This document shows positions 12,960-48,907 of a stretch of DNA of 64,000 bases, piece after piece. Made by a program: the position numbers and the translations under genes. The notes under the pieces are model-generated. The model was not told the origin of the DNA, searched no databases, and saw only the letters and a program-made list of their open reading frames with translations. This DNA comes from Diplonema japonicum (lineage: Eukaryota; Protista; Euglenozoa: Diplonemea): contig OZ025728.1 of the NCBI GenBank assembly GCA_964019335.1, forward strand, positions 186,001-250,000, written 5' to 3'. How positions within the stretch are numbered: the stretch's first letter is position 1; the number at the start of each line of letters is the position of its first letter.

Positions 12960-15771
12960 CTGAAATGGTTTTAAGTTAGGATGAAGAAGCGAAGAAATAG
13001 ATAAAAAGGGGTGGGAAAGAATAAATACTGCATACGAAAACAGAGAGTCGAGTAAAAAAGGGAAAAGGTGACTGACATCCTCAAGAGGAGCCTCCCACGT
13101 ACCAGGAATTAAGCAGAGGTTGCTTCCATGGCCCGTATCAGTCTATCGCCAGAAAGAATAATGAAAATAACATAACAAAGAGAAGGGGAGAAGAAACGGA
13201 AAAAGACGGCTTGGTCATCAGAGAATGTTGACCCAAATGCGTCGGCGGACGCAGTTTAACGTCATACCCGGGACGGAAACCATGTTGGGAAAGCAGAAGG
13301 GAAGTTAAGAGTCAAGAAGTGGAAAAGGAAAAGGTGGAAACTAAAATCATAGGGTGCGAGGTCTGTGAGAACCTGCATAGCCTATCGCCCTCGTAGCACG
13401 CCGGGCCGGCACTCCTACATTGCGTAGGGTCGTCTCCAGTAGTTCCTAGTTGTAGGAGTTCAGCACAGTCGACCACTGTGACTCGCTGTAGTAGAGGGTC
13501 CCTGCCCCCACGAAGTCAGCGAGTAGGGCTGCCACAGTCGGATACGACTTGTCCTTGAACCCTTGGGTCTGCAACCGAAAGCCCTGTTCCTGGCGGGAAG
13601 CGTAGAGCCACGTCGAGTCATAACAGACCAGCAGACACGGGATCGCGACGCGTGTGTCGAGGGGGACCGTGACCATGGGGGTCTCACCCAGGAAGTGTGT
13701 GCAAGCCCTGGACATGCAGCTGAGGTCAAAGACGGCCTCGCCCTGGGAAAGGAAGCCCAGGTGTCGAAGCTCATCCAGGTCCTCAGGGCCGTCGACGTCT
13801 GCTTCCCTGGTGAGCCTCTTAAGGGCGACAAGTCCAGTGACTCTGGTGTTCGGCCTCGTCGCGGCGAGATCCCGTTTGGCCGCGGGAAGGGCGGGGCCGT
13901 CTTCGGGTTCCGGGCGTTTGTTCCTCTGCCCGTTGTAGGTGAGCAGGAGAGGGGTCCTCCCTGGAGTCCTAGTCTCGTCACCTCTTGGGGCCTCGGAACC
14001 GAAGAGTGGGTGTTTCCAGCCGCCTTGGGCGAAGAACTCCGACCACCACTGTTGCTGTACCGCGGTGTTCAGCCCCGAGTGCCATTCGTGAGACAACCGA
14101 AGACGTTCGGTGGTAGGCAACGCCTTGTGCGCAATCAGAAGAAGCTGTTCCTGGTTGGCGACGGTTGCCTGTTGGTCGGCAGTTCTATCCGTGTCACGGG
14201 CCTCGAGCAGCAGTTGATGTGGAGAGGTGTCCAGGTGCATCGGGAGGGGACCGACCGACAGGAGCTGACGCTGGTGTTCGTCCAAGAGCTCCGGGTGTCG
14301 CCGGAAGTAGACCAAGAGACTGAGGTATCGATCCATCCGTCTCTGGAGGGCCCTTCGGTTGAGGGCTTCCTGATCAAAACCCTGTGACTGCTCGCGCAGG
14401 ATGAGAAGATCCCCATCGCCTGTGGAGGAACTCTTACCACGACGGCTTTCGTGCTCGTAAGCAGTGCCGTCGTGCTTCTTCTTGCGCGAGGGTCTGTCCG
14501 GGGAGTCCTGCGTGAGGTCGATCATTTCTAAACCACCATCCGCCTGGTGAGGGTCTAGGGGAGCGTCTGCCTCGGCTCGGGCCACGGGCGGCTCCAGGGT
14601 CAGCGTCGTGTCTCTCTGGGCGTTGACCACCGGTTGAAGCGTCGCGTGTCCCATGGCGGGAGCCATCGGCGTATCCATCCCGAGTCCGATGTTCTCATGG
14701 ACGGACTGGATGCAAGGAGTGAGCTGTACCTGGCGGGCGCCGAGGGGGGCGTCTGCCAGAACGGGCGTTGTCACGGCTCGGGCGAGCGATGACTCCACAG
14801 CCGACGTTGTCACAATCTGGGAGCCGACCACTGGTTGGAGTGTCGCGTGTCCCATGGTAGACGACGGCATCGGTGTGTCACTCCCGTGTCCGGTGTCCCG
14901 ACGGGTGGACTGAGTGCAGGCCGCGAGCTGGGTGGATGACACGTCCGTTGGCGGTGGAAGGCATGGTGTCAACCGAGGCTCAGTAACCGGCCGCCTCGAC
15001 AGGGTCGCGCGGGGCGTCGGAATTTCGACAGACTTCGTAAGTCTGACCGCCGCGGCCGAGGGCGACCCCAGTCCGGCGTCCATCGGGGGCAGTCTACTGC
15101 TGGGAGGATCCGTCTGGAGCGTCGATGATATCGAGAACAGTACAGGTGCTGTGACACGGTCCGTCTGACAGGTTGCGACTGCTGTCTGTGGTGTAGACTT
15201 GTGCAGACTCGAGACCTTCAGGAAGAGCGGGACAGTTCCGACCACGTTAGTCTGGCTTGCCGTAGACGTGGTGGTGACAGAGCATCCGGTGTGCACGGCT
15301 CGCGCGGCCACGGCGGCAGCTAGGGCTACGATGGCGGTGGCGACGGGCCGCCCGAAGTGAGCGGTGTGCGCATCCACACCTGATGCGGCGACTCCTGTGT
15401 CGACCCGCCGGGTGCGTGCGGCATATGTAGCTATAGCTGCAGCTAGGGTGACATAAGTTAGGAGGGTGCGATCTTCCGGGGTGTTGAGAGCGGTCTCAGT
15501 CTTTCGCGCGCTCGAGTCGCTTACCTGGGGTGCCGCCGGGGTGATGACCGGCTCAAACTGGCGAAACTCAGCCTCAGGGTCTAGAACACGTGTGTTGTGT
15601 TTCCTGCCTGGGGTTGTCCTGGCCCACACATCGTCTGGGATGCAGAGGATGTTGTGTTCGGAGTATGTCGCGCAGATGTGTTTGAGGCTCTGGAGCCTTA
15701 GCCGTACGTCGGTGTCTTTGACCATGTACCTTCCCTTCTTCCTGAGAGCGATGAACCAGTGGCCGCTGAGA
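12960..15771 (-). mobile_element. PLE-A 5'-truncated copy with intact 3' end (ORF stop at 13446)
   Basis: 13960-15771 matches 42930-44741. It continues to ...STVLNSYN* and a 3' UTR ending ...CATTTCAG. Confidence 0.9.
13387..13431 (-). promoter_or_regulatory. Conserved RNA motif at the PLE stop codon
   Basis: Shared by A and B, with a covarying GCAA-loop hairpin. Confidence 0.55.
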
Positions 15772-15857
15772 GTCCGGATAAAAGACCCCCAACCCAAAAT
15801 AACGTAGGATCAGGGGGGGTTTGCTACAGGCTTCCCCAAGCCCCATAGGCGGGCGCG

Positions 15858-35504: not shown

Positions 35505-36646
35505 TTTTTTTTTTTTTTTAAATTCCACTTCCTTTTCGACTTGCTAAGGCCGCACCCACTAGGTGGGTTGGAAGTGTCACGAGACGCTCACCCGGTTGCC
35601 CGGGTACTCATGACCGTACTGGTGTTCTCATTCCACAAGCTTTGCTGGCTGTTTGGCACTTTACACTTTTTTTTTTTTTTTTTTTTTTTTGGCTACTGCG
35701 GGTGCCGGACCTCAGTATCCTTTTTTTTTTTTTTTTTTTATCACGTTATAGGGGTGGGGGTAAACTTGTTCAGGGGGGCTTTTTTATTTTCACTGCTACG
35801 TCTGTCTCGTCGGCTGCTGTAGTGGGGGGGTTGGTGGTGTTCTCTGTTTCTGCGAGAAACAGGATTGGGGGTCTGGGATGGGATCTCGGGATTCTGAATG
35901 AATCAGAAGTGCCTCAGCCGCCTTCTGATTGGCATGCTACTTCGGCAGGTTAGTTGGTTGTTGTGGAGTTGTTGCGGAGGGGGGTAGGTCCCCGGTATCT
36001 TCGAGATATTGGATTGCTTTTCGTGGGTTCTCCGCAAGGATGTGTCGAAGTGTTTGTCCCTGCTTGCTTTGGATGACGGACAGTCTAGGAAGAGATGTTG
36101 GAGGGTTCGCTTCGTGTTGGGGCCACACTTTACGCAAATTCGCTGCTCGGCGTATCCTACCTTCAGCAGGTCATGGTGCCCAGTCTTCAGCTGGTTGATC
36201 AGCACCTCTTCCTTCCTGTTCAGCCCTTCCATCTTTTGGGTGCTTCCGTTCTACCTGCCCACTTATTGTATGTCTTTTCCTTATTTAGCCTTGCTAATAT
36301 TTCCTGCTTTCCGGTTTTTCTTATGTAGTTCTTCGCTGCACCCATGCTGATCTTCTGTGTTGCTTCCTTGTCTCTGCCGTTGCTGGCGAGTTGGTCTGCC
36401 TTCTCGTTTCCTTCTATTCCGCAGTGGCCTGGGATAAAGCAGCATGTGAGGTGGTTTCCTCTCGTTGTCAGTGCGTGTATGTTGTGCCATGCCTCGACCA
36501 CCATGTCTTCTTGTTGCTTTGCGGGACCTTGCTTAAGCTTTTGCAGGCACGCCATAGAGTCTGTCAGCAGGTTGATCTGCGCCCCTTGCGTGTCCTCCTT
36601 CACGAGCCTCGCTAGCGCCGTGTTGATGGCGTTCATCTCTGCTTGA
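35505..36646 (-). mobile_element. RNase H LINE 3' fragment inserted in the PLE-B ORF
   Basis: RNase H motifs and poly(A) tail; separates the Josephin-like domain from the P/T-rich repeat. Confidence 0.85.
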
Positions 36647-38798
36647 AAACTCTGTCTGAGTCCGGACCAGGTGAAGGGACCGGGTCATCATTGGGGGTGA
36701 GGCTAGCTGCAGGGGTCTGGCTCAAACAGGGGCCTGAAACCGGTGGCATTACCTCGTCCTGCGCTCCCTTGATGCAAGCGTGGACGTCGAACGCTTTTGG
36801 TCTGCCGCCGTTTTGCTCCCTTAAGGTCCTTGCTCTGGCCCAGCTTTCTTCGGTGATACCCAGGATGTTCTGTTCGTCATACATACGTAGGACCTGCCTC
36901 AGTCCATTGACACGGTGTTCTTCCTCGTCTGTGTCCATCACGGTGTACCACGACCTGCCGGTTTTGATGGCTGTAGTCCAGTGGCCCGTCCTGGAGCCTT
37001 TCGGCGGGCCGATTACCAGAACTGGGTACCGTCCGCTCTTGACCACGCTCTGCAGCGAGGCCTCTTCGCCAAGGATCTTTTGGCAGGCAAGGGACAGGGT
37101 ATCTTGGGAGAAGTCGCCTTTCTCGTTCGGCTGGTACTCCTTCGCATGCCCCTCGGTGTGCAGGGCGAGCTCCGAGGTACAGAGGTGGTGTTGGATTGTC
37201 TGCATCTCTGCGAACGGCATGCGTGCCAGCTCTGCGTAGTCTGCGATCCAGTTCACCACGGCCCAACCACACTCGAGGCCTACGCGTCCTTCGCCACTTT
37301 CCTGGTGTAGCGACGTGGGGTATTCCGATGTAGGTGTCTCCATTGGTGTCGTTTCCGTTGAGGGCGGCTGTTGTGGAGGTGGTTCCTTTTGCGAGCTCGT
37401 GTCAGCGGTGGAGGTGGACTCTTGTGTTGTCTGCGTCGGTTCGGAGGGGAGGGCTGTGCTCTTTCGGGGGTCCTTACGTCCCACATACGCGAGATCCGGG
37501 TAGCATTCGTCAAGTTCGCGGCCTGCTCTGTAGTTCTTCCCTGCTTCGGTAAAGAAACTTTGGAGCTCCCCTTTCTCCCAGCCGTAGTTCTTGTTGACGC
37601 GCTCACAAAGGAACTCGTGGAATGCTCGGTTCAGGAGTTTGTGCTCGTGACCTCGATCGCGCAAACTGAAGTATGTCTTTGCAATTTGCCTCTTGAAGTC
37701 CGGTGAGCTGTTGGTGAGGCAAAGCGCTTGCTGCATCATGCCCTTCAGGATACCTGGGCCTTGTGTTGAGGGAGCTGCTGTGTGCCCGTGTGTGAAACGC
37801 GTGGGCTTGAACTTCCAGTTCGCAGCCTTGTCATAGACTGACAAGCGTACCCAGTTGTTTTTCGGCGTTTCGTGCCGTTCGGTCCTGATCCGCATGCCGA
37901 TGAACGGAACGTCGTCGTCGTTGTCCGACGTCTTGGCGTAGGACATCCCGTACAGCTCTTCGGGTGGGGGGGTCCGGGGCCCATCGGTATGCCCCGCACC
38001 TGGCGCAGAGCACGGCCGCCTTGCTCGACGTACGCGTTGTTAACGACGAATTCGACTAGTTCCTCCACCATCGAGAGGGAGTACACTTTGTCGTCGTCTT
38101 CTGCATCCGCGAAGCTACTTCCGCTCTTGTTTATCACCAGCTCCTTCCCGGCGTGCTCGAAGGCTTCGCGGATTGCTCTGCCCAGGCCCTTTCGAAGGAG
38201 TCCCTGGTCCAGGTTGGAGTACATCGTTTTAAAGTCGTAGGTGGCGGGGACCTTCGACTTGAAAAACGTGTACCGCTGCTTGATCTCAGCCGCGACCTGC
38301 TCAGCTGATTCCACGATCCAGAAGCGGCGTACTCCGCTGAGGCCCGGATTCACCTCCTTGCTTCGGAACTCCAGGTCCTTCTCGTGCAGGGTGCGTTGTA
38401 CAGCTTTTAGGAGGCTCGAGAGCTCTTTGTGCGCTCCTGTCATCGCTGCAACCGGTCTTGCTGCGTTCGTTGGGGCGGCGGCCTTGAAGGCGTCGTCGCG
38501 CTCACCGTCGGAACCTGCAGCTAGCAGTCGCTCCATTATGGACTGCGTTGATTGTGCTTGTGGGTTGGTGCCTTCCTCCGTCGCAGGGGGGTCTCGGGAC
38601 GACACGCCAGAAATCCACCGGAAGCCTACTTGTTCTTTGTGTAACTTGATGGCCCCGTAAAGGTATGGCATCTTCGTCGACTTGATCTTGATACCGAACG
38701 ATTCAGTCTCTTCTGTGATGCTATGCCTTGTGCTCTCCATGTCTTGTACCTCTGCAAAACACTCGCCGTCGAGCTGGGCGTGGAGCAGTTGTAGGTAG

Positions 38799-39711
38799 CT
38801 GAAATGGTTTTAAGTTAGGATGAAGAAGCGAAGAAATAGATAAAAAGGGGTGGGAAAGAATAAATACTGCATACGAAAACAGAGAGTCGAGTAAAAAAGG
38901 GAAAAGGTGACTGAAATGGTTTTAAGTTAGGATGAAGAAGCGAAGAAATAGATAAAAAGTGACTGACATCCTCAAGAGGAGCCTCCCACGTACCAGGAAT
39001 TAAGCAGAGGTTGCTTCCATGGCCCGTATCAGTCTATCGCCAGAAAGAATAATGAAAATAACATAACAAAGAGAAGGGGAGAAGAAACGGAAAAAGACGG
39101 CTTGGTCATCAGAGAATGTTGACCCAAATGCGTCGGCGGACGCAGTTTAACGTCATACCCGGGACGGAAACCATGTTGGGAAAGCAGAAGGGAAGTTAAA
39201 AGACAAGAAGTGGAAAAGGAAAAGGTGGAAACTAAAATCATAGGGTGCGAGGTCTGTGAGACCCTGCATAGCCTATCGCCCTCGTAGCACGCCGGGCCGG
39301 CACTCCTACATTGCGTAGGGTCGTCTCCAGTAGTTCCTAGTTGTAGGAGTTCAGCACAGTCGACCACTGTGACTCGCTGTAGTAGAGGGTCCCTGCCCCC
39401 ACGAAGTCAGCGAGTAGGGCTGCCACAGTCGGATACGACTTGTCCTTGAACCCTTGGGTCTGCAACCGAAAGCCCTGTCCCTGGCGGGAAGCGTAGAGCC
39501 ACGTCGAGTCATAACAGACCAGCAGACACGGGATCGCGACGCGTGTGTCGAGGGGGACCGTGACCATGGGGGTCTCACCCAGGAAGTGTGTGCAAGCCCT
39601 GGACAAGCAGGAGGTACATGATCTTCCTAGCAACTGCTTGATAGTGGCCGTTGTTGGAGATCTGTACCTCTCCGTCATCGTCGAGAGAGATGGTGGGCGG
39701 TATCCTACCCT
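38799..39711 (-). mobile_element. PLE-A 3' fragment plus a captured PLE-B fragment, nested in PLE-B
   Basis: A 3' end at 38799-39605, then a copy of ~40577-40684. Flanked by a ~57-bp duplication (38742-38798 / 39712-39769). A 48-nt A end is inserted at 38911. Confidence 0.85.
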
Positions 39712-42700
39712 TCTTGTACCTCTGCAAAACACTCGCCGGTCGAGCTGGGCGTGGAGCAGTTGTAGGTAGTGTGCCTTGCAGACCATGCCGATGTCGTGGA
39801 CGCTTTTGTCGACTGGCAAGAACACGAAAGCCTTCTGCAACTCTTTTAGCTTTGATTTAAGCTGCTCGGGGACCTTAGGATCAAAGACGGGCTGCTGGAG
39901 CTCTTTGTTCAGAGTAGCCTCTGCTTTGGTGTGTAGAGCCCGTAGGAACGTCAATCTTTCAGACGCGAGGGCTTTCTTGAAGTGAAGGTTTACGAAGCCG
40001 ACCAAGTCTTGTTCCAGGTTTTCGGAGCTCGTGAGCGCGTCGACTGACAGGCGGAACTTCATACCCATGCTTAGGATCTTCAGCAGTTGCTCGTCGTCTG
40101 TCAGCTCCGAGGCGATACCGCATGTGTGTCCTTCGTGCTGGTGCGAGGAGTTCCACTTGGCGCAAGGGCATGGGTCAACATCGCTCGTTTTCGGTCTTAC
40201 GCCAGCGAGGCTGACTTGGCTGACATTGCACACCGCGTACAGTCTTCCCAAGTCGATTGCAAACCCTAACTCTGTCCAAGATCTTCGGGTTTGGGCATGC
40301 CGTGCGGACTGCTGGGTCGCCGAAGATCTTGTGCCATGGAATCTTCTGCTTACCCTTGTGGTCGAACACCGTCTTGAACCAGATTGTGTTGTCTGCGGGT
40401 TTCTTGACCTTCTGCAGTTCCGAGGGGCTTAGACGGTGCGAGAGGCCTTTCTCCAGCAATTGGACTCGTTCTGTGTAGAATTTGCCTGTTATGTATCGTC
40501 GCACAAAACTGAGGTACCGTACCACGGTCTTTGGAAGCCAGCGTTCGTACGAGTATGTCGCCAGGTCCTCGTGGTTCAGGAGGTGCATGATCTTCCTAGC
40601 AACTGCTTGATAGTGGCCGTTGTTGGAGATCTGTACCTCTCCGTCATCGTCGAGAGAGATGGTGGGCGGTATCCTACCCTTCTTGCGCCTTGTTTGTTGC
40701 TGGTGCTCGGCTGTTTGGGCAGCAGCTGGAGTCTTTTTGGAGACAGGGGTCTGCTTGTCCTGTGATGCAGACTTCCTTTGCTTCGGTGCAAGTTGCTTGC
40801 TCCGTGTAGTCGTCTGTTTGTTCTTCGAGGCCGACCTTTTGTTTTGTGTGGCAGCCGGCAGCAGTCTTTGGGGACTGGGGCCTGCTTGCCCTGTGGCGTA
40901 GACTTCTTTTGCTGCGTTGCAGACTGCTTGTCCCACATGGTAGACTGTCTGTTTGTCCGTTGGTTTTGCGAGGTCGTCTGCGTGGCCTGGCTTGCCCTTT
41001 CAGGTTTGGGCTTGCGGGCCGTGTTCTTCCGTTGCCTACGGGGGAAGTCGCGCCACTTCATGGAGGAGTTCAGTGGGCACTTCAGGCGGTTGATGAACTT
41101 GGCCTCCGACACGGACGCGACTCTGTAAAAGTGCTTCCTGTCCGTGTAGGCGGCTTCCGGGACCTTCAGAACCGGCACGCAGTACAGGGGTGTGTCGAGG
41201 CCAGCGATGTGCTCCTGTACTGGTGTCACATCACCGCCGCGGCGCACAGCTGACTTCGAGTCGTTCCAGTGTTGCTTGCCGCGTTTGTAGGCCGTGTTGA
41301 CAGTCTGCCCTGCGTAGAGCGGCTGGCCAAAACTGTTTACGAGTACGTAAACGACACCCTTGTCCTTTCGCAGGTCCAGGTGAGGGTTCCAGTCCATTGC
41401 TTTCAACAACTTGGCGTATTTGCTGCCGAACCGGATGGCGGCTAACTTGGAGCCTTCTACCCACTCGTTCCAGTCTGGAGTTCCGTTTTTCATGATGGGT
41501 TTGTCAGCTTCTTTGTTGAGTGGTTGGTGGCTCTTCCGGCTGCGGTACCTCTGAGCCTGCTTGTCCATGCCTCCAAGGAAGGGATCTCTACGGATCTCGG
41601 TCTTCTCGGCAGCGCGTCCCCAACGCACGCTCGCAACCTCGCGGTAACCGTCGGGAGCAGGGGTGGTCGCAGGACGATGGCGCAGGGAGAGTTCCTGCTT
41701 GAGCTGAAAAGCTGCCTTGAGCCCGTATCGTCGCGCGATTTCACGGGTGTAGGCGGCGTAGTCAGGGGCGTAGTCCTGTGTCTTCAGGGCTACGGTTATC
41801 ATCAAAACGTTGCCAGCTGTCTTGATGTCGCGGAAGAAGAGGTGGTGCGAGACACTCTTCTTACTCACGGAAAGGAGCGCTTTTATAACGTCGTCTCGTT
41901 TCGGAGACAAGCGCATATGGGGGGATGGTGGGGGTTTTTTCGCTGGTGGTGATTGTGGGTGGTAACCTTCTAGATTTTACCTTTGAATGTGTGTTGTTAA
42001 GCCTAGGTTTTTAGGGGTAGGATGTGACCAGTTTCGATAAAAAGGCCCTCATCCAAACGGGCGGCCTCTCCCGTTTCCCCGTAAGAAGATCAGAGGGTGG
42101 GGTGATGGGGTTATCCCTTTCGAGAGCGCCCCTCCGCGCTCCACGAATGCACGTACCACGGGCTGTCCCATCGTCCGTATAATACGTACCGTGGGCCTGT
42201 CGTCGTCGAGGTGGTTTTGAACTAAGTGCCGACGACGTGACTGAACCGTTGTGCCAGACCTACACAACGTGGCTGCGTGTACCATTGGGGGTGCGCGCTT
42301 CCAGCTGGGAGACTACTACTAAGTAGAAGGAGAAGAAGGACAAGGTAAAAAGGGTGGAAGTCGAGATGCGGCGACCCCGCTGTCCTCATCTACGAGGGTG
42401 AGGTCAGGCCCTCTGCCTTTTGGATGACGAGGCCGCATTGAGTGAAACACAGCGAATGATTTGTGGGGTGATGGGAATCGGGATCGGGAGGGGATAGTAA
42501 GGGAGAAGTCGTAGAATGCGTGAAAGGCTACCTTGCAGGAGAGCCTGGCTAGTCTCAGCTACCGTATGACGGGTAGGAGAGCCCCATCGTTGGTCTCAGG
42601 GGGTTGTGCAACGGGTGTCGCGAATATGTCAGCAGCGCGGCGCTGCTGGGCTTATAGTCTTCAGAGCCACTGGTCGCCTTAGAAGACGGAGTCTTAGAAG

Positions 42701-42929
42701 GACCCATGTGGTAGTGAAGTAAGAATCCCTTGGTAAACGTTCTTCTTCTTTCAATCGATTGTTATATGTACTTATAAAATGTAAAATATAGCGCGCATTC
42801 GACGACACTGATCAAGCGACTGGCACCTTCCGAAGAAGGGCCTCCCACGTCCGCCGGGTTGAGCAGAGGATGCCCCGGGTCGGCCGCTCCAGTCTGATCA
42901 TGTCGCACTATAATATATGTTCTCATCTC

Positions 42930-45900
42930 CCTGGAGTCCTAGTCTCGTCACCTCTTGGGGCCTCGGAACCGAAGAGTGGGTGTTTCCAGCCGCCTTGGGC
43001 GAAGAACTCCGACCACCACTGTTGCTGTACCGCGGTGTTCAGCCCCGAGTGCCATTCGTGAGACAACCGAAGACGTTCGGTGGTAGGCAACGCCTTGTGC
43101 GCAATCAGAAGAAGCTGTTCCTGGTTGGCGACGGTTGCCTGTTGGTCGGCAGTTCTATCCGTGTCACGGGCCTCGAGCAGCAGTTGATGTGGAGAGGTGT
43201 CCAGGTGCATCGGGAGGGGACCGACCGACAGGAGCTGACGCTGGTGTTCGTCCAAGAGCTCCGGGTGTCGCCGGAAGTAGACCAAGAGACTGAGGTATCG
43301 ATCCATCCGTCTCTGGAGGGCCCTTCGGTTGAGGGCTTCCTGATCAAAACCCTGTGACTGCTCGCGCAGGATGAGAAGATCCCCATCGCCTGTGGAGGAA
43401 CTCTTACCACGACGGCTTTCGTGCTCGTAAGCAGTGCCGTCGTGCTTCTTCTTGCGCGAGGGTCTGTCCGGGGAGTCCTGCGTGAGGTCGATCATTTCTA
43501 AACCACCATCCGCCTGGTGAGGGTCTAGGGGAGCGTCTGCCTCGGCTCGGGCCACGGGCGGCTCCAGGGTCAGCGTCGTGTCTCTCTGGGCGTTGACCAC
43601 CGGTTGAAGCGTCGCGTGTCCCATGGCGGGAGCCATCGGCGTATCCATCCCGAGTCCGATGTTCTCATGGACGGACTGGATGCAAGGAGTGAGCTGTACC
43701 TGGCGGGCGCCGAGGGGGGCGTCTGCCAGAACGGGCGTTGTCACGGCTCGGGCGAGCGATGACTCCACAGCCGACGTTGTCACAATCTGGGAGCCGACCA
43801 CTGGTTGGAGTGTCGCGTGTCCCATGGTAGACGACGGCATCGGTGTGTCACTCCCGTGTCCGGTGTCCCGACGGGTGGACTGAGTGCAGGCCGCGAGCTG
43901 GGTGGATGACACGTCCGTTGGCGGTGGAAGGCATGGTGTCAACCGAGGCTCAGTAACCGGCCGCCTCGACAGGGTCGCGCGGGGCGTCGGAATTTCGACA
44001 GACTTCGTAAGTCTGACCGCCGCGGCCGAGGGCGACCCCAGTCCGGCGTCCATCGGGGGCAGTCTACTGCTGGGAGGATCCGTCTGGAGCGTCGATGATA
44101 TCGAGAACAGTACAGGTGCTGTGACACGGTCCGTCTGACAGGTTGCGACTGCTGTCTGTGGTGTAGACTTGTGCAGACTCGAGACCTTCAGGAAGAGCGG
44201 GACAGTTCCGACCACGTTAGTCTGGCTTGCCGTAGACGTGGTGGTGACAGAGCATCCGGTGTGCACGGCTCGCGCGGCCACGGCGGCAGCTAGGGCTACG
44301 ATGGCGGTGGCGACGGGCCGCCCGAAGTGAGCGGTGTGCGCATCCACACCTGATGCGGCGACTCCTGTGTCGACCCGCCGGGTGCGTGCGGCATATGTAG
44401 CTATAGCTGCAGCTAGGGTGACATAAGTTAGGAGGGTGCGATCTTCCGGGGTGTTGAGAGCGGTCTCAGTCTTTCGCGCGCTCGAGTCGCTTACCTGGGG
44501 TGCCGCCGGGGTGATGACCGGCTCAAACTGGCGAAACTCAGCCTCAGGGTCTAGAACACGTGTGTTGTGTTTCCTGCCTGGGGTTGTCCTGGCCCACACA
44601 TCGTCTGGGATGCAGAGGATGTTGTGTTCGGAGTATGTCGCGCAGATGTGTTTGAAGCTCTGGAGCCTTAGCCGTACGTCGGTGTCTTTGACCATGTACC
44701 TTCCCTTCTTCCTGAGAGCGATGAACCAGTGGCCGCTGAGACTTCGTTTCAAGGGACCAACGATCAAGCAGGGGCTTTCTTTCATGCCCGCACGGAAGAC
44801 CTCCAAGTTTGCACCAACGACCATGAGGCAAGCACGTGACAAGGTCGAGCGGGAAAAGTTGCCAAGAGGATCGGGCGCTTCATCAGTGCTGGAAGGGGAG
44901 ATGAGTCGTGAGAAGCCGTGGTACATCTCCTGGATCTCCTGCATTGTAGAGAAGGGGATGCGGTCCACACCAGCATAGTCCGCCAACCAGTTTATGACGG
45001 CCCAGCCGCATTCCAGGCCCAGGCGACCTTCCCCGCTGTTGGTGTGCAGGTTGATGGGGGGCGAAAAAACCTGGTCCGTGACACCAGATGGTGAGACCAC
45101 GGAGGCTGCTCGGGGTTGTGACGGTTCGACAAGACCTGAAGAGCTGTCCGAGGAACTGTCCGAGGGCTCGTCTGAGGGGCCCCCCGAGAAGGCGACTGAG
45201 GAGACGACTGAGGAGTCAGCTGAGGAGTCGTCCGAGGAGTCGTCCGTGGGAAGCGCACGGGGTTTCTTGGGGCCTATGTACGTTTTTTCCGGCAACCAAG
45301 AATCTACCGGGGCTTTGGCGTCGTATCGGTGGAGGACTTGCGTGAAGAAGGCCAGCAGGTTGCTTTTCTCCATGGCGAAGCGTCGATCCACGCGTTCGAT
45401 AAGGAAGGCGTTGTACGCTTTCCGCAGGCCGCCCTTGTCGTGACCGCGATCTAGGAGCAGGTAGATCACTGAAGCGATCTCCCGTTTGAGGTCCGCGATG
45501 TTGTTGGTCAGGGCGCAGGCACGGATGACCATGCCCTTGAAGATGCCTGGTCCCTGGGTGGTGGGCGCCGCGGTGTGCCCGTGGGTGAACCGCGTAGGCC
45601 GGAAGCGCCAGTTCTGCGCCTTATCGTTAATGCTAAGTCTAATATAGTTGTGCTTAGCTTGTTCGTGGCGCTCTATCCGGATGCGAATCCCGATAAAGGG
45701 GACGTCGCATGGGTCTGAAGAGGTCTTTACATAAGCCATGCCATAAAGCTCCTCCGGGGGTGGCGCAGTGCTCCACAACAGGAAGTCGTCGATGTAGCGA
45801 CACGCGTTGCAGTAGCGTTTCAAGGTCTCCCAGTCCTCTTCGGCGAGGAGCTTGTCGATGTATGCGGCCTCCACGGCGTAGCAGAACAGGTTCGCCAGGT

Positions 45901-48900
45901 CGGGGGAGGCGTTCCCACCCATGGGGATACCCTTTACTTGACGAACAGCGCGGCCACCCTGCACAACATAGGTGTTGTCAACGACGAGGTCCAGGAGCTT
46001 ATGGATCCGTTCCGGGGTGTAGACATCGTCCTCGTCGGCATCTGTGAAGGAGCTCCCGTCCTTGCCACGGGTGAGGTTCTTGCCGGTAAAGTCGAACGCT
46101 TCTTGGACTGCTTTACGAACCCCCTCTTTCAGACGCTCTTGGTCGAGGTTGGTGTACATGTCCCGGAAGTCGTACGTGGCAGGGGACAGGCTTTTGTAAG
46201 CCGTGTACTGCTGCTTGATATCCGCAGCTACGTTCTCGGCCGAGTCGACGATCCAGTACCGCTTTAGTCGGATACCGTCGGGACCGTGGGTCTTGGACCT
46301 GCCCTCCAGATCCTTGTCCAGCAGCGCGCGTTGGACAGCCTTCAGGAGGGAAGACAGTTCTAGATGGAGGGCCGTGGTGGCAGCTGTGGGTTTCTTAGCT
46401 TTATTGCCCGTTGTATCGCCGCCTGCTGCGACCAAGTTCTCCATAATTTCCTGCGTGCTGACCGCTGCTGGTTGGTCCACAGGGGGTGCATCAGTGGAGG
46501 AGACACCAGAGATCCACCTGACGCCCACTTTGTCTTTGTGTAGCTTCAGGGTACTGAAATGGTTTTAAGTTAGGATGAAGAAGGTACCGTACAGGTATGG
46601 CATGCGACGTGTGGAATCGAGGTTGAAGGTCTTGGCTTGATCAGCTATTTCGGAGAAGATCGAGTCCAAGGGCTTCGAGACCGGCTCGAAAGCTTGGCTA
46701 TCAAGCTGTTGGTGCAGGATCCTGAGGTAGTGATCCTTGCAACAGACGCCAATGTCGTGGGTGCTTTTGTCTATGGGGAGGAAAACGTAGACCTCCTGAA
46801 GTTTCCGGAGCTTTGTCTTGATGAACTCCGGGACTGAGGGGTCGAAGACCGGAGACTGAGTGTGGGGGTGGAGAAGGTTCTGTGCCTTGGCGAGGAGGAC
46901 CTTCCGGAAGGAATCCTTTTTCACTGCAGGGGATCTCCGAAAGTTCTGAGTGATGAACCCGTTGATGTCCTCCTCGAGACTTTGGGAAGAGAGGAGGGCG
47001 TGTGTTGAGAGGCGGAACTTCATGCCTCTGTTCAGAACCTCCTTCACTTCGTCGTCATCGATGACCTCTGCTGCTAGTCCGCAGGCGTGTCCCTCATGTG
47101 TGTGTGAGGTCTTGCGCTTCGAGCAAGGGCAGTTTGTTGTAGGCTCGGCCGCTTCTGGACGCGGGGTCTCGATGCTGAGCTTCGTCACATTGCACACTGT
47201 GGCCTTGAGGGTTTGACCAAGCTTGTTGCACATGTGTACTCTGCGAAGGAGGGCTGGCTTGGGGCATGCCGCAATTACCTCCTTGTCCTCGAAGACCTTA
47301 CGCCAGAGGATCATCTCCTTGGCCTTGTGGTCAAAACTCGTTTTGAACCACACGAAGCCTTCGTCTCGGCGGACCACCTTTTTCAAGAGGGCAGGGCTGA
47401 GGCGGTTGGTGAGGCCTCGTTCGATAGCCGCTATCTTGGCGGTGAAGAAGTTCCCGACGAAGTAACGTCTCAGGAAGTTCAGGTACCTGAAGACGGTCTT
47501 GGGGGCCCAGGTAGTGAAGTCGTAGTTCAGCACATCGGGGTGTGCACACATCGCGGTGATCTTCATACACAGGGACTTGTAGTTGGACCCAGTAGCCTGG
47601 ATCGACAGCTCCCCGTCGTCGTTCAGCCGTATCGAGGGAGCGGTAGATCTGGTGGGGGTGTTGTTGGGGTTCGAAGGGGACGTAGTAGTGTTGCTGCTGG
47701 GGTCCTGTTTGGCATTCGAGCGCCCCTGGTGTTGGTGTCGCTGCTGTTGCTGCTCGCGTACCGTCTTAGGTTTACGTTTCGTGTTGCGGCGGCGACGGGT
47801 CTGCGTCTTAGCAAACCTACCACGCATGTTAAGGGAGCAAGCCAGCCTATTGATGTACTGGTTCTCCCTGGGGATCGCAACACGACGGAAGGACTTGGCG
47901 TCGTCGAAGAACTTGGGGTTGATCGATTCGACGGGGAAAGCGAATAACGGGCCCCCGTTTTCCCTGAGGGCCTTGTGAAAGCGGGTGTCGTTGCTTTCAG
48001 CGTTCTCTCTGTGCGATCTGGCGCTGCTCCAGTGGCCCTGCATACGACGACGTAAGGTGTTAAACGTCTGCCCTGCGTACACAGGTTCACCGTGTTTGTC
48101 GACAGCGAGGTAGATGATACCTGCTGCGTCCTGTTCGGGGGCCTTTCCTTGGCGCATGTTCTTTACGATGCGGCTGTACTTGGCCATGAACTTGGCGGCT
48201 GCGTCCTGGCTGAGAGACTCCCAGAGGGCCCAGTCAATGCTGCCGTTGTTTCGTTTGCAGCTGACCGGGCTAGGCTTGGAGATGTCCCGCGACTTCTTGA
48301 CTTGGTCCTTTGCCATTGTGCTAAGGAAGAAGTCCTTGCGGATCTCGTACCTGTTTTGATCTTTGCCCCAGCGGTTATCGTAGGCAGGTTGGTATCCGTG
48401 ACGATAAGCGGGCTGGGGGCCAGACCGGTGGTTCGGCCGGTGGGCCGGTTGAGGAGTAGTAGGCGTTTTCCGTAAGGTCTTGACGGGACGCGTCGGAGCT
48501 ACACCTTCGGTGAAACAGGCACGGACTCCATGGTGGTGTAGGAGTGCCTGCGTGAAGAGTGCATAGGGAATATGTGTGTCCCTGGTGGCGATCTCCAGGT
48601 GGACCTTTAGCACGTTGCCGTTTTGTACGACGTCACGTACGAAGAGGGCCTTTCGGACACCCGCACCATAGGCGTCACAGATGGTGCGGATGACTTCCTC
48701 TCTGGAGGGCGACCTGTTGATTGCACGGTAGTTGAAGGGGTGGGAGTTATATATGCGCGACTGACTATACTTCTTATAAGTGTTTGTTTTATTCGTTGTT
48801 GACGGAAAGGTATTGATCTTTAGGGGTGCATTTCCTGCGGCACGCCGCACCTGTGATGCGCGCGTGTCATAACGAGTTGGAAAGCGGCCGTAGGCGGGTC

Positions 48901-48907
48901 TCTTCAT
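42930..48907 (-). CDS. PLE-A polyprotein: GIY-YIG endonuclease, CxC linker, RT, Josephin-like protease, low-complexity/SIM region (interrupted by a 33-nt insertion)
   Basis: GIIYLAVDKHGEPVYAGQT (GIY-YIG), NCPCSK..H.HEGH (CxC), YDFRDMYTNL, QVKGIPMGGNASPDLANLF and RYIDDFL (RT). ORFs 46565-48907 and 42923-46528 are in one frame, split by the insertion at 46554-46586. Adding the 3' part from 13446-13959 gives ~2150 aa. Confidence 0.88.

Follow-up and report, generated by a model that had tools for sequence, protein, structure and literature searches.

The stretch of DNA considered here, a 64,000-nt window on contig OZ025728.1 of the Diplonema japonicum assembly GCA_964019335.1 (positions 186,001–250,000, forward strand; coordinates below are those of the window unless another contig or locus is named), carries copies of two families of Penelope-like elements (PLEs), A and B, in which the reverse transcriptase (RT) is followed by a cysteine protease domain with a predicted Josephin fold. 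The family A copy (42881..48907, minus strand) covers aa 1–1998 of the 2152-aa open reading frame (ORF) of an intact element at 98.7% identity in a tblastn search of the window with that ORF. Reading from the N-terminus, and always on the minus strand, it contains a GIY-YIG endonuclease (EN) core (GIIYLAV...VYAGQT, 47999..48121; PF01541, 21.7 bits on the window ORF), a CxC motif (NCPCSKRK..HTHEGHACG, 47078..47134), an RT core (45764..46012; partial match to Pfam RVT_1, with RYIDDF at 45782–45799), the Josephin-like domain (44582..45058; 159 aa, corresponding to aa 1273–1431 of the 2152-aa ORF) and, in an otherwise fast-evolving linker, the sequence EMIDLTQDS (43472..43498), which resembles a SUMO-interacting motif (SIM). 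The putative catalytic residues C27, H120 and D135 (numbering of our alignment of the domain, A1) are encoded at 45008–45010, 44729–44731 and 44684–44686, exactly where the initial annotation of the locus had placed them, and the peptide that it quoted for 44590–45055(−) is translated as given. This copy is defective: its frame is broken into two minus-strand ORFs (46565–48907, 780 aa, and 42923–46528, 1201 aa) by a 33-nt insertion that nine other A copies do not have, and it stops at aa 1998. Because it is 3′-truncated, it does not include the second Josephin-like domain of family A (aa 1985–2152), predicted to be catalytically dead, which is found in the window at 13449..13952(−) within a 5′-truncated A copy (13449–15788). 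The latter copy has a VIDLT-type motif at 14502–14528(−).

The family B copy (36687..41907, minus strand) extends from the GIY-YIG to the Josephin-like domain in several frames. Its CxC equivalent (DPCPCAKW) is at 40153–40176(−), and a fragment of a family A tail, a 97.8% identical piece of the A C-terminal domain, is inserted at 39340–39612(−). The Josephin-like domain of B has an intact triad and lies at 36828..37319(−) inside ORF 36633–37946; the peptide reported for it in the initial annotation is correct, whereas the interval that accompanied it, 36830–37315, is one base out of frame and contains stops. The protease blocks of A and B comprise 159–164 aa and are 42% identical, which bears out the proposal that both families keep an alignable block after the RT, and A′, a third family, has 75% identity with A over the block. 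Between A and A′, dN/dS is 0.16 in the RT, 0.32 in the Josephin-like domain, 0.40 in the mid-tail and 0.20 in the last 168 aa; the protease domain is under purifying selection. Given this ratio and the E-value of 5e-34 for B-type copies in a six-frame search, the likeness of the A and B blocks is far above chance.

In the host assembly (62.5 Mb, 132 contigs), the six-frame search returned 47 matches to the block, in open frames of up to 2175 codons, and at least 12 genomic copies are 99–100% identical in the protease block. The intact A copy (G000:C52; L040:1714–8172, minus strand) is a single 2152-aa ORF in which GIY-YIG (aa 263–303; PF01541, 23.3 bits against a cut-off of 22.6) is followed by CxC (~aa 592), the YIDD of the RT (aa 1027), a Ser/Asp-rich linker, the protease and a ~720-aa tail, confirming that the ~2150-aa GIY-YIG/CxC/RT/protease layout is real. 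Direct repeats of 300 nt, 7897 bp apart, surround this ORF in the manner of PLE pseudo-long terminal repeats (pseudo-LTRs). GIY-YIG is thus N-terminal to the RT, and CxC lies between EN and RT. Inspection of the translations by eye revealed NCPCSK..HEGHACG in A and DPCPCAK..HEGHTCG in B, as well as LPIDKSTHD, that is, DK(S) and not DKG, and no CCHH finger after GIY-YIG in either family. The organisation is of the pseudo-LTR/partial tandem kind without a canonical hammerhead ribozyme; no Rfam family, the hammerhead ribozyme included, reached threshold within the window. Such features define the Chlamys group of PLEs (Craig et al. 2021, PMC8557442). Judged by its sequence, the element is a permuted PLE of Chlamys type (N-terminal GIY-YIG, CxC, RT) of D. 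japonicum, and its assignment to PLEs in the initial annotation stands. The many near-identical copies and the direct repeats around the unit point to recent activity of the family. Moreover, a 191-aa ORF from a D. japonicum transcript (P0007) matches a B-type genome copy at 100%; this copy, at least, is therefore transcribed. The same match and an intronless HSP90 gene of the assembly, 98–99.6% identical to proteins of the D. japonicum transcriptome but 87–88% to those of Flectonema and 86% to Rhynchopus, place the genome in D. japonicum or a strain very near to it.

Twenty relatives of the protease block emerged when 1.84 billion representative proteins were searched exhaustively by HMMER with an A/A′/B profile. 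The named ones are from the diplonemids Flectonema neradi, Lacrimia lanifica and D. papillatum, together with a D. japonicum transcript; the rest are on ENA, JGI and NCBI contigs. In D. japonicum, a genome search with a profile of the domain found it only in PLE families A, A′, B and a further one, B′. Four motifs are common to the relatives, H..SGxG...ECGWA..NW, GWFS, GHW and DTD, and every member spanning these sites retains the Cys, the His and the leading Asp of DTD, with the exception of P0011, a D. papillatum protein in which both Cys and His are lost. The triad is thus common to three PLE families and to homologues in other diplonemids, as expected from the initial annotation. One near-identical A copy (L011; G000:C85:55823–59416) has Asn in place of Asp135 (KNTD), the residue used at this position by canonical Josephins.

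The AlphaFold2 model of the domain, built with 15 homologues, has a pLDDT of 89.4 and a pTM of 0.86. In this predicted structure Cys27 stands at the start of a helix (residues 27–39), while H120 and D135 are at strand ends. When the model was compared with 48,161 representative PDB chains, the top five were all Josephins, with 130–144 residues aligned: ataxin-3-like 3o65_A was the best structural match (Z 12.3, rmsd 2.9 Å, 142 residues), followed by JOSD2 (6pgv_A, Z 10.8) and bacterial PaJOS (8.8), BpJOS (8.6) and PcJOS (8.4). An earlier three-sequence model (pLDDT 63) had the same two Josephins on top. Likewise, the only natural-protein matches of a 15-sequence profile among PDB sequences were four ataxin-3 Josephin entries; their E-values are sub-threshold (0.15–0.39), and they are in register with the profile, GWFS aligning with GFFS and HW with HW. 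The catalytic residues of ataxin-3, H119 and N134, are 15 residues apart, and the spacing from His to Asx is the same here. Josephins (ataxin-3, ATXN3L, JOSD1/2 and the bacterial Josephin deubiquitinases/clippases; MEROPS C86, PF02099) thus resemble the Diplonema domain in its predicted fold, in the putative catalytic Cys that begins a helix, in the GFFS-like and HW motifs and in this spacing. They differ from it in several respects: identity is only 13–16%, the third residue here is Asp where they have Asn, a longer loop here separates the Cys from the conserved N-terminal His, and the domain is part of a transposon polyprotein. Other searches contributed little: Pfam comparison of single sequences assigned none of the members to a protease family, neither the protease domain nor the RT region had a phmmer match among PDB sequences, a word-indexed search of long proteins with the domain returned no match, and a scan of metagenomes with A1 patterns gave no relatives. 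In the ESM Atlas, the protease domain retrieved just a weak C39-like cluster and the C-terminal domain retrieved nothing.

This last match, together with the Foldseek E-values, in which the C39 peptidase domain of PCAT1 ranks first (1.2e-4) and 3o65_A next (2e-4), would fit membership of another papain-like family, for example that of the C39-like double-glycine peptidases. The domain might also be a non-catalytic ubiquitin-binding or scaffold module, given that dead versions exist (the C-terminal copy and a D. papillatum LINE copy, both described below). C39 peptidases come after the Josephins in the structural ranking, with Z of 8.4 or less, and the TM-score of 3o65_A, 0.61, is the highest in the list, against 0.46 for C39. 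A C39 identity was rejected: Josephins are clearly ahead by Z, by TM-score and by the length aligned, and GWFS and HW are motifs specific to Josephins. As for a non-catalytic module, the post-RT copy keeps the triad strictly while the dead copies have lost it, which implies selection on the catalytic residues. We regard both of these readings as very improbable. The model-based evidence agrees with the initial view of a papain-like, Josephin-like cysteine protease: the domain has, by prediction, the Josephin fold and Josephin motifs, but Pfam does not recognise it by sequence, and it is best called 'Josephin-like'.

Related elements carry another deubiquitinase-family protease in the same place. 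A search with the RT region among long proteins identified five diplonemid proteins, three of which consist of N-terminal EN, RT and then a ubiquitin-specific protease (USP/UCH, PF00443). These are P0156, from an ENA genome (17 member sequences), whose USP boxes are variant but recognisable; P0157, from a Rhynchopus humris transcript (PF00443, E 2.5e-21); and P0158, from D. papillatum (10 member sequences; PF00443, E 1.3e-20). In the latter two, the Cys and His boxes are intact and the CxC, DK and RT motifs are the same as in family A. Since P0157 is a single transcript ORF, its fusion is not an artefact of gene modelling. The USP-bearing PLEs share with the D. japonicum elements a homologous EN–CxC–RT region (27–31% identity over ~1000 aa in pairwise BLASTP; 31–33% by the figure of the RT search) and a deubiquitinase-family protease downstream of the RT. 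They differ in that this protease is of the USP/UCH family, not Josephin-like, and in that no dead second domain was detected in them. In an unrooted tree of diplonemid RTs, USP-bearing P0156 groups with Josephin-bearing A, B and Flectonema P0014, and P0157 joins P0158 in a clade apart (split support 95/96); branches are long. This topology suggests at least one Josephin/USP swap among diplonemid PLEs. No USP-bearing PLE was found in the D. japonicum genome, where matches to P0157 end before its USP domain. P0158 bears the annotation of a host gene, 'putative ubiquitin carboxyl-terminal hydrolase 16', and a further protein, P0154, labelled 'Kinesin-like protein 3', represents the fusion of a kinesin gene model with a PLE, with GIY-YIG and RT inside.

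The Josephin-like domain is also present on other transposon classes. In P0009 it follows a Mutator-like element (MULE) transposase and a SWIM finger. P0010, a long interspersed nuclear element (LINE) of Flectonema neradi, begins with the domain (aa 1–155), which is followed by an APE endonuclease and an RT. A further LINE, P0149 of D. papillatum, has an N-terminal OTU protease and a degenerate Josephin-like copy in which Cys is replaced by Trp and His by Gln.

Taken together, these observations favour, at a probability that we put at roughly 0.6, an accessory Josephin-fold cysteine isopeptidase with an intact triad that forms part of the ~2150-aa PLE protein and acts in trans as a deubiquitinase or ubiquitin-like protein (Ubl) protease. 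It would strip ubiquitin-type marks either from the element's own protein or ribonucleoprotein, or from host factors and chromatin at the nicked target, and removal of such marks may shield retrotransposition from ubiquitin-dependent degradation or restriction. Action in trans is favoured because USP, an established deubiquitinase family, occupies the same post-RT slot in related elements, because the domain is also found on a DNA transposase, where there is no polyprotein to process, because no site resembling the ubiquitin tail is conserved at the borders of the PLE domain, and because the post-RT copy keeps the catalytic residues that other copies have lost. Of the two roles put forward in the initial annotation, the removal of ubiquitin-like marks thus gains support from the sequences of the sister elements.

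The other proposed role, processing of the polyprotein, fares less evenly. Here the domain would act in cis and cut the 2152-aa polyprotein, for instance freeing EN–RT from the tail, much like the papain-like leader proteases of RNA viruses that have deubiquitinase-like specificity. Its position between long low-complexity linkers in the PLEs would suit such a protease. In the Flectonema LINE P0010, moreover, the stretch from the domain to the APE endonuclease contains, just ahead of the latter (aa 160–186), PLRGGG and SIRGGG, which resemble the tail of ubiquitin and are candidate sites of self-cleavage. In the PLEs, by contrast, no GG, RGG, LxGG or LRGG site flanking the domain is conserved in A, A′ and B; the same domain is carried by a MULE transposase; and the sister PLEs have in the same place USP, a family known for isopeptidase and not for polyprotein work. 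For the PLEs we consider cis-processing unlikely, and the trans-acting isopeptidase remains the preferred reading.

Several points weigh against that preference. The LRGGG motifs of the Flectonema LINE suggest cis-cleavage in at least that lineage. Neither A nor B nor any of 13 homologues matches PF02099 even at E ≤ 10 in the comparison that the initial annotation had proposed, and PF02099 also had no match when the host genome was searched in six frames. With this profile silent, the Josephin relationship rests on predicted structure and sub-threshold profile matches; the genome search likewise means that nothing in this assembly hints at recent capture from a Josephin gene of the host. The deubiquitinase activity is predicted from fold and comparison, and its support is computational. 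Finally, no sequencing run on record as RNA holds the element, there being no D. japonicum RNA run among them. Contigs of two runs from other organisms hold pieces that are 95–99% similar to it; that these runs are of RNA origin is an unconfirmed guess.

The tail of the PLE polyprotein may add to the proposed function. In A, A′ and B, the 168 aa at the C-terminus (alignment A3) align with the protease family profile A2 over 122 columns (hhalign probability 94.2%, E 1.1e-7). In A, the catalytic positions of this C-terminal domain have changed from Cys to Thr, from His to Thr (…STW…) and from Asp to Gln. Further examples of the domain are at L040:1717–2220(−) in A and at L032:3926–4435(−) in B, and, by these substitutions and alignments, the polyprotein of both families ends in a catalytically dead Josephin-like domain. 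In copies shortened at the 5′ end, the two Josephin-like domains would be all that is left to see. The linker between the two domains is repetitive and diverges fast, yet one short motif is kept, EMIDLTQDS in A, EVIDLTQDS in A′ and LVIDLTGDD in B (L032, ~4717), that is, (M/V)IDLT followed by acidic residues. We take it to resemble the classical VIDLT-type SIM, which makes it a candidate SIM. The dead domain and the SIM-like motif would probably serve as ubiquitin/SUMO-binding or targeting modules. Conservation of this motif in A, A′ and B within a divergent linker might also be read as a sign that the active domain is a SUMO-specific or other Ubl-specific protease, a sub-variant of the trans-acting reading with another substrate, and NeSL and Utopia LINEs are known to carry Ulp1-like SUMO proteases (PMC4640811). 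Set against this, the structurally characterised Josephins act on ubiquitin (by the titles of their PDB entries), the domain swapped into sister PLEs is USP, and a SIM can steer a deubiquitinase to SUMOylated substrates without SUMO protease activity. Specificity for SUMO or another Ubl appears quite unlikely to us.

A broader scenario can be put forward, tentatively and with more doubt than confidence: PLEs, LINEs and MULEs of diplonemids may repeatedly have acquired proteases of deubiquitinase families (Josephin-like, USP, OTU), as a counter-measure throughout the lineage to the ubiquitin/SUMO-dependent control of transposition. In the PLEs, a SUMO-targeted deubiquitinase at the break made by the endonuclease would be built from three parts: the active Josephin-like domain, the VIDLT motif that resembles a SIM, and the dead domain. 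Its analogue would be ataxin-3, which opposes the SUMO-targeted ubiquitin ligase RNF4 at DNA breaks.

PLEs are usually viewed as minimal EN+RT elements. The architecture is nevertheless not undescribed, as the initial annotation had supposed: in Chlamys-1_cBra of Chara braunii, Craig et al. 2021 (PMC8557442) reported a C-terminal extension that shows weak Josephin homology and has another, C/H-rich motif. The Chara element is like the Diplonema ones in its N-terminal GIY-YIG, CxC and RT within a long ORF (~1800 aa) and in its Josephin-related C-terminal extension. It differs in that its host belongs to the streptophyte algae and not to Euglenozoa, that the published evidence is a weak motif only, and that the second C-terminal motif is C/H-rich and of unknown nature, whereas the second domain in Diplonema is a predicted dead Josephin-like one; the two protease domains are compared here by description only. 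A Josephin-like cysteine protease, proposed to interfere with protein degradation, is described for Dualen/RandI non-LTR elements (Kojima and Fujiwara 2005, as cited in PMC8557442). The likeness consists in a retroelement-borne Josephin-like protease, and the diplonemid LINE P0010 shares its domain with the PLEs; Dualen/RandI, in turn, belong to another retroelement class (APE/RLE LINE), and likeness to the Dualen domain is by description. The Ulp1-like proteases of NeSL/Utopia LINEs (PMC4640811) are likewise transposon-borne members of an Ubl-deconjugating family, and they differ in their clan CE fold, their N-terminal position and the class of element. Craig et al. 2021 (PMC8557442) make no mention of ubiquitin, USP or Euglenozoa, and the D. 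papillatum genome paper reports LINE, SLACS, R2, jockey, TATE, MULE and Helitron elements and no PLEs. Our literature searches found no report of PLEs in diplonemids and, apart from the Chara case, none of a PLE with a deubiquitinase. New here are the diplonemid host lineage, the structural assignment, the tandem of active and dead domains with a SIM-like motif, and the alternation of Josephin and USP. The only published hint of a Josephin-like add-on in PLEs, that from Chara, is a weak sequence similarity, whereas the predicted structure now permits a confident assignment, in an active element family of a culturable marine protist lineage. The Josephin-like/USP swap would provide comparative evidence that deconjugation of ubiquitin or Ubls is selected, and it makes the role of ubiquitin-type marks in the control of retrotransposition directly testable. 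As for genome annotation, among the D. papillatum genes labelled 'ubiquitin hydrolase' or 'kinesin' there are some that represent PLE polyproteins or fusions with such polyproteins.

Two minor features of the window and its genome may be added. The 33-nt insertion in the window copy of family A (46550..46582, minus strand) is bounded by GT..AG on the sense strand, with the joint at 46549->46583, and carries a CTAAC-like box on that strand. Its sequence, in versions of 31–37 nt, is dispersed at no fewer than 25 other genomic sites with 97–100% identity and is present on both flanks of the intact A copy (G000:C52:202227–202257 and C52:210124–210154); it may be part of the PLE terminal repeat. 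In the same genome, the cytosolic HSP90 gene is intronless and occurs in at least five near-identical copies (G000:C9, C32 and C58), including two same-contig pairs 14–47 kb apart.

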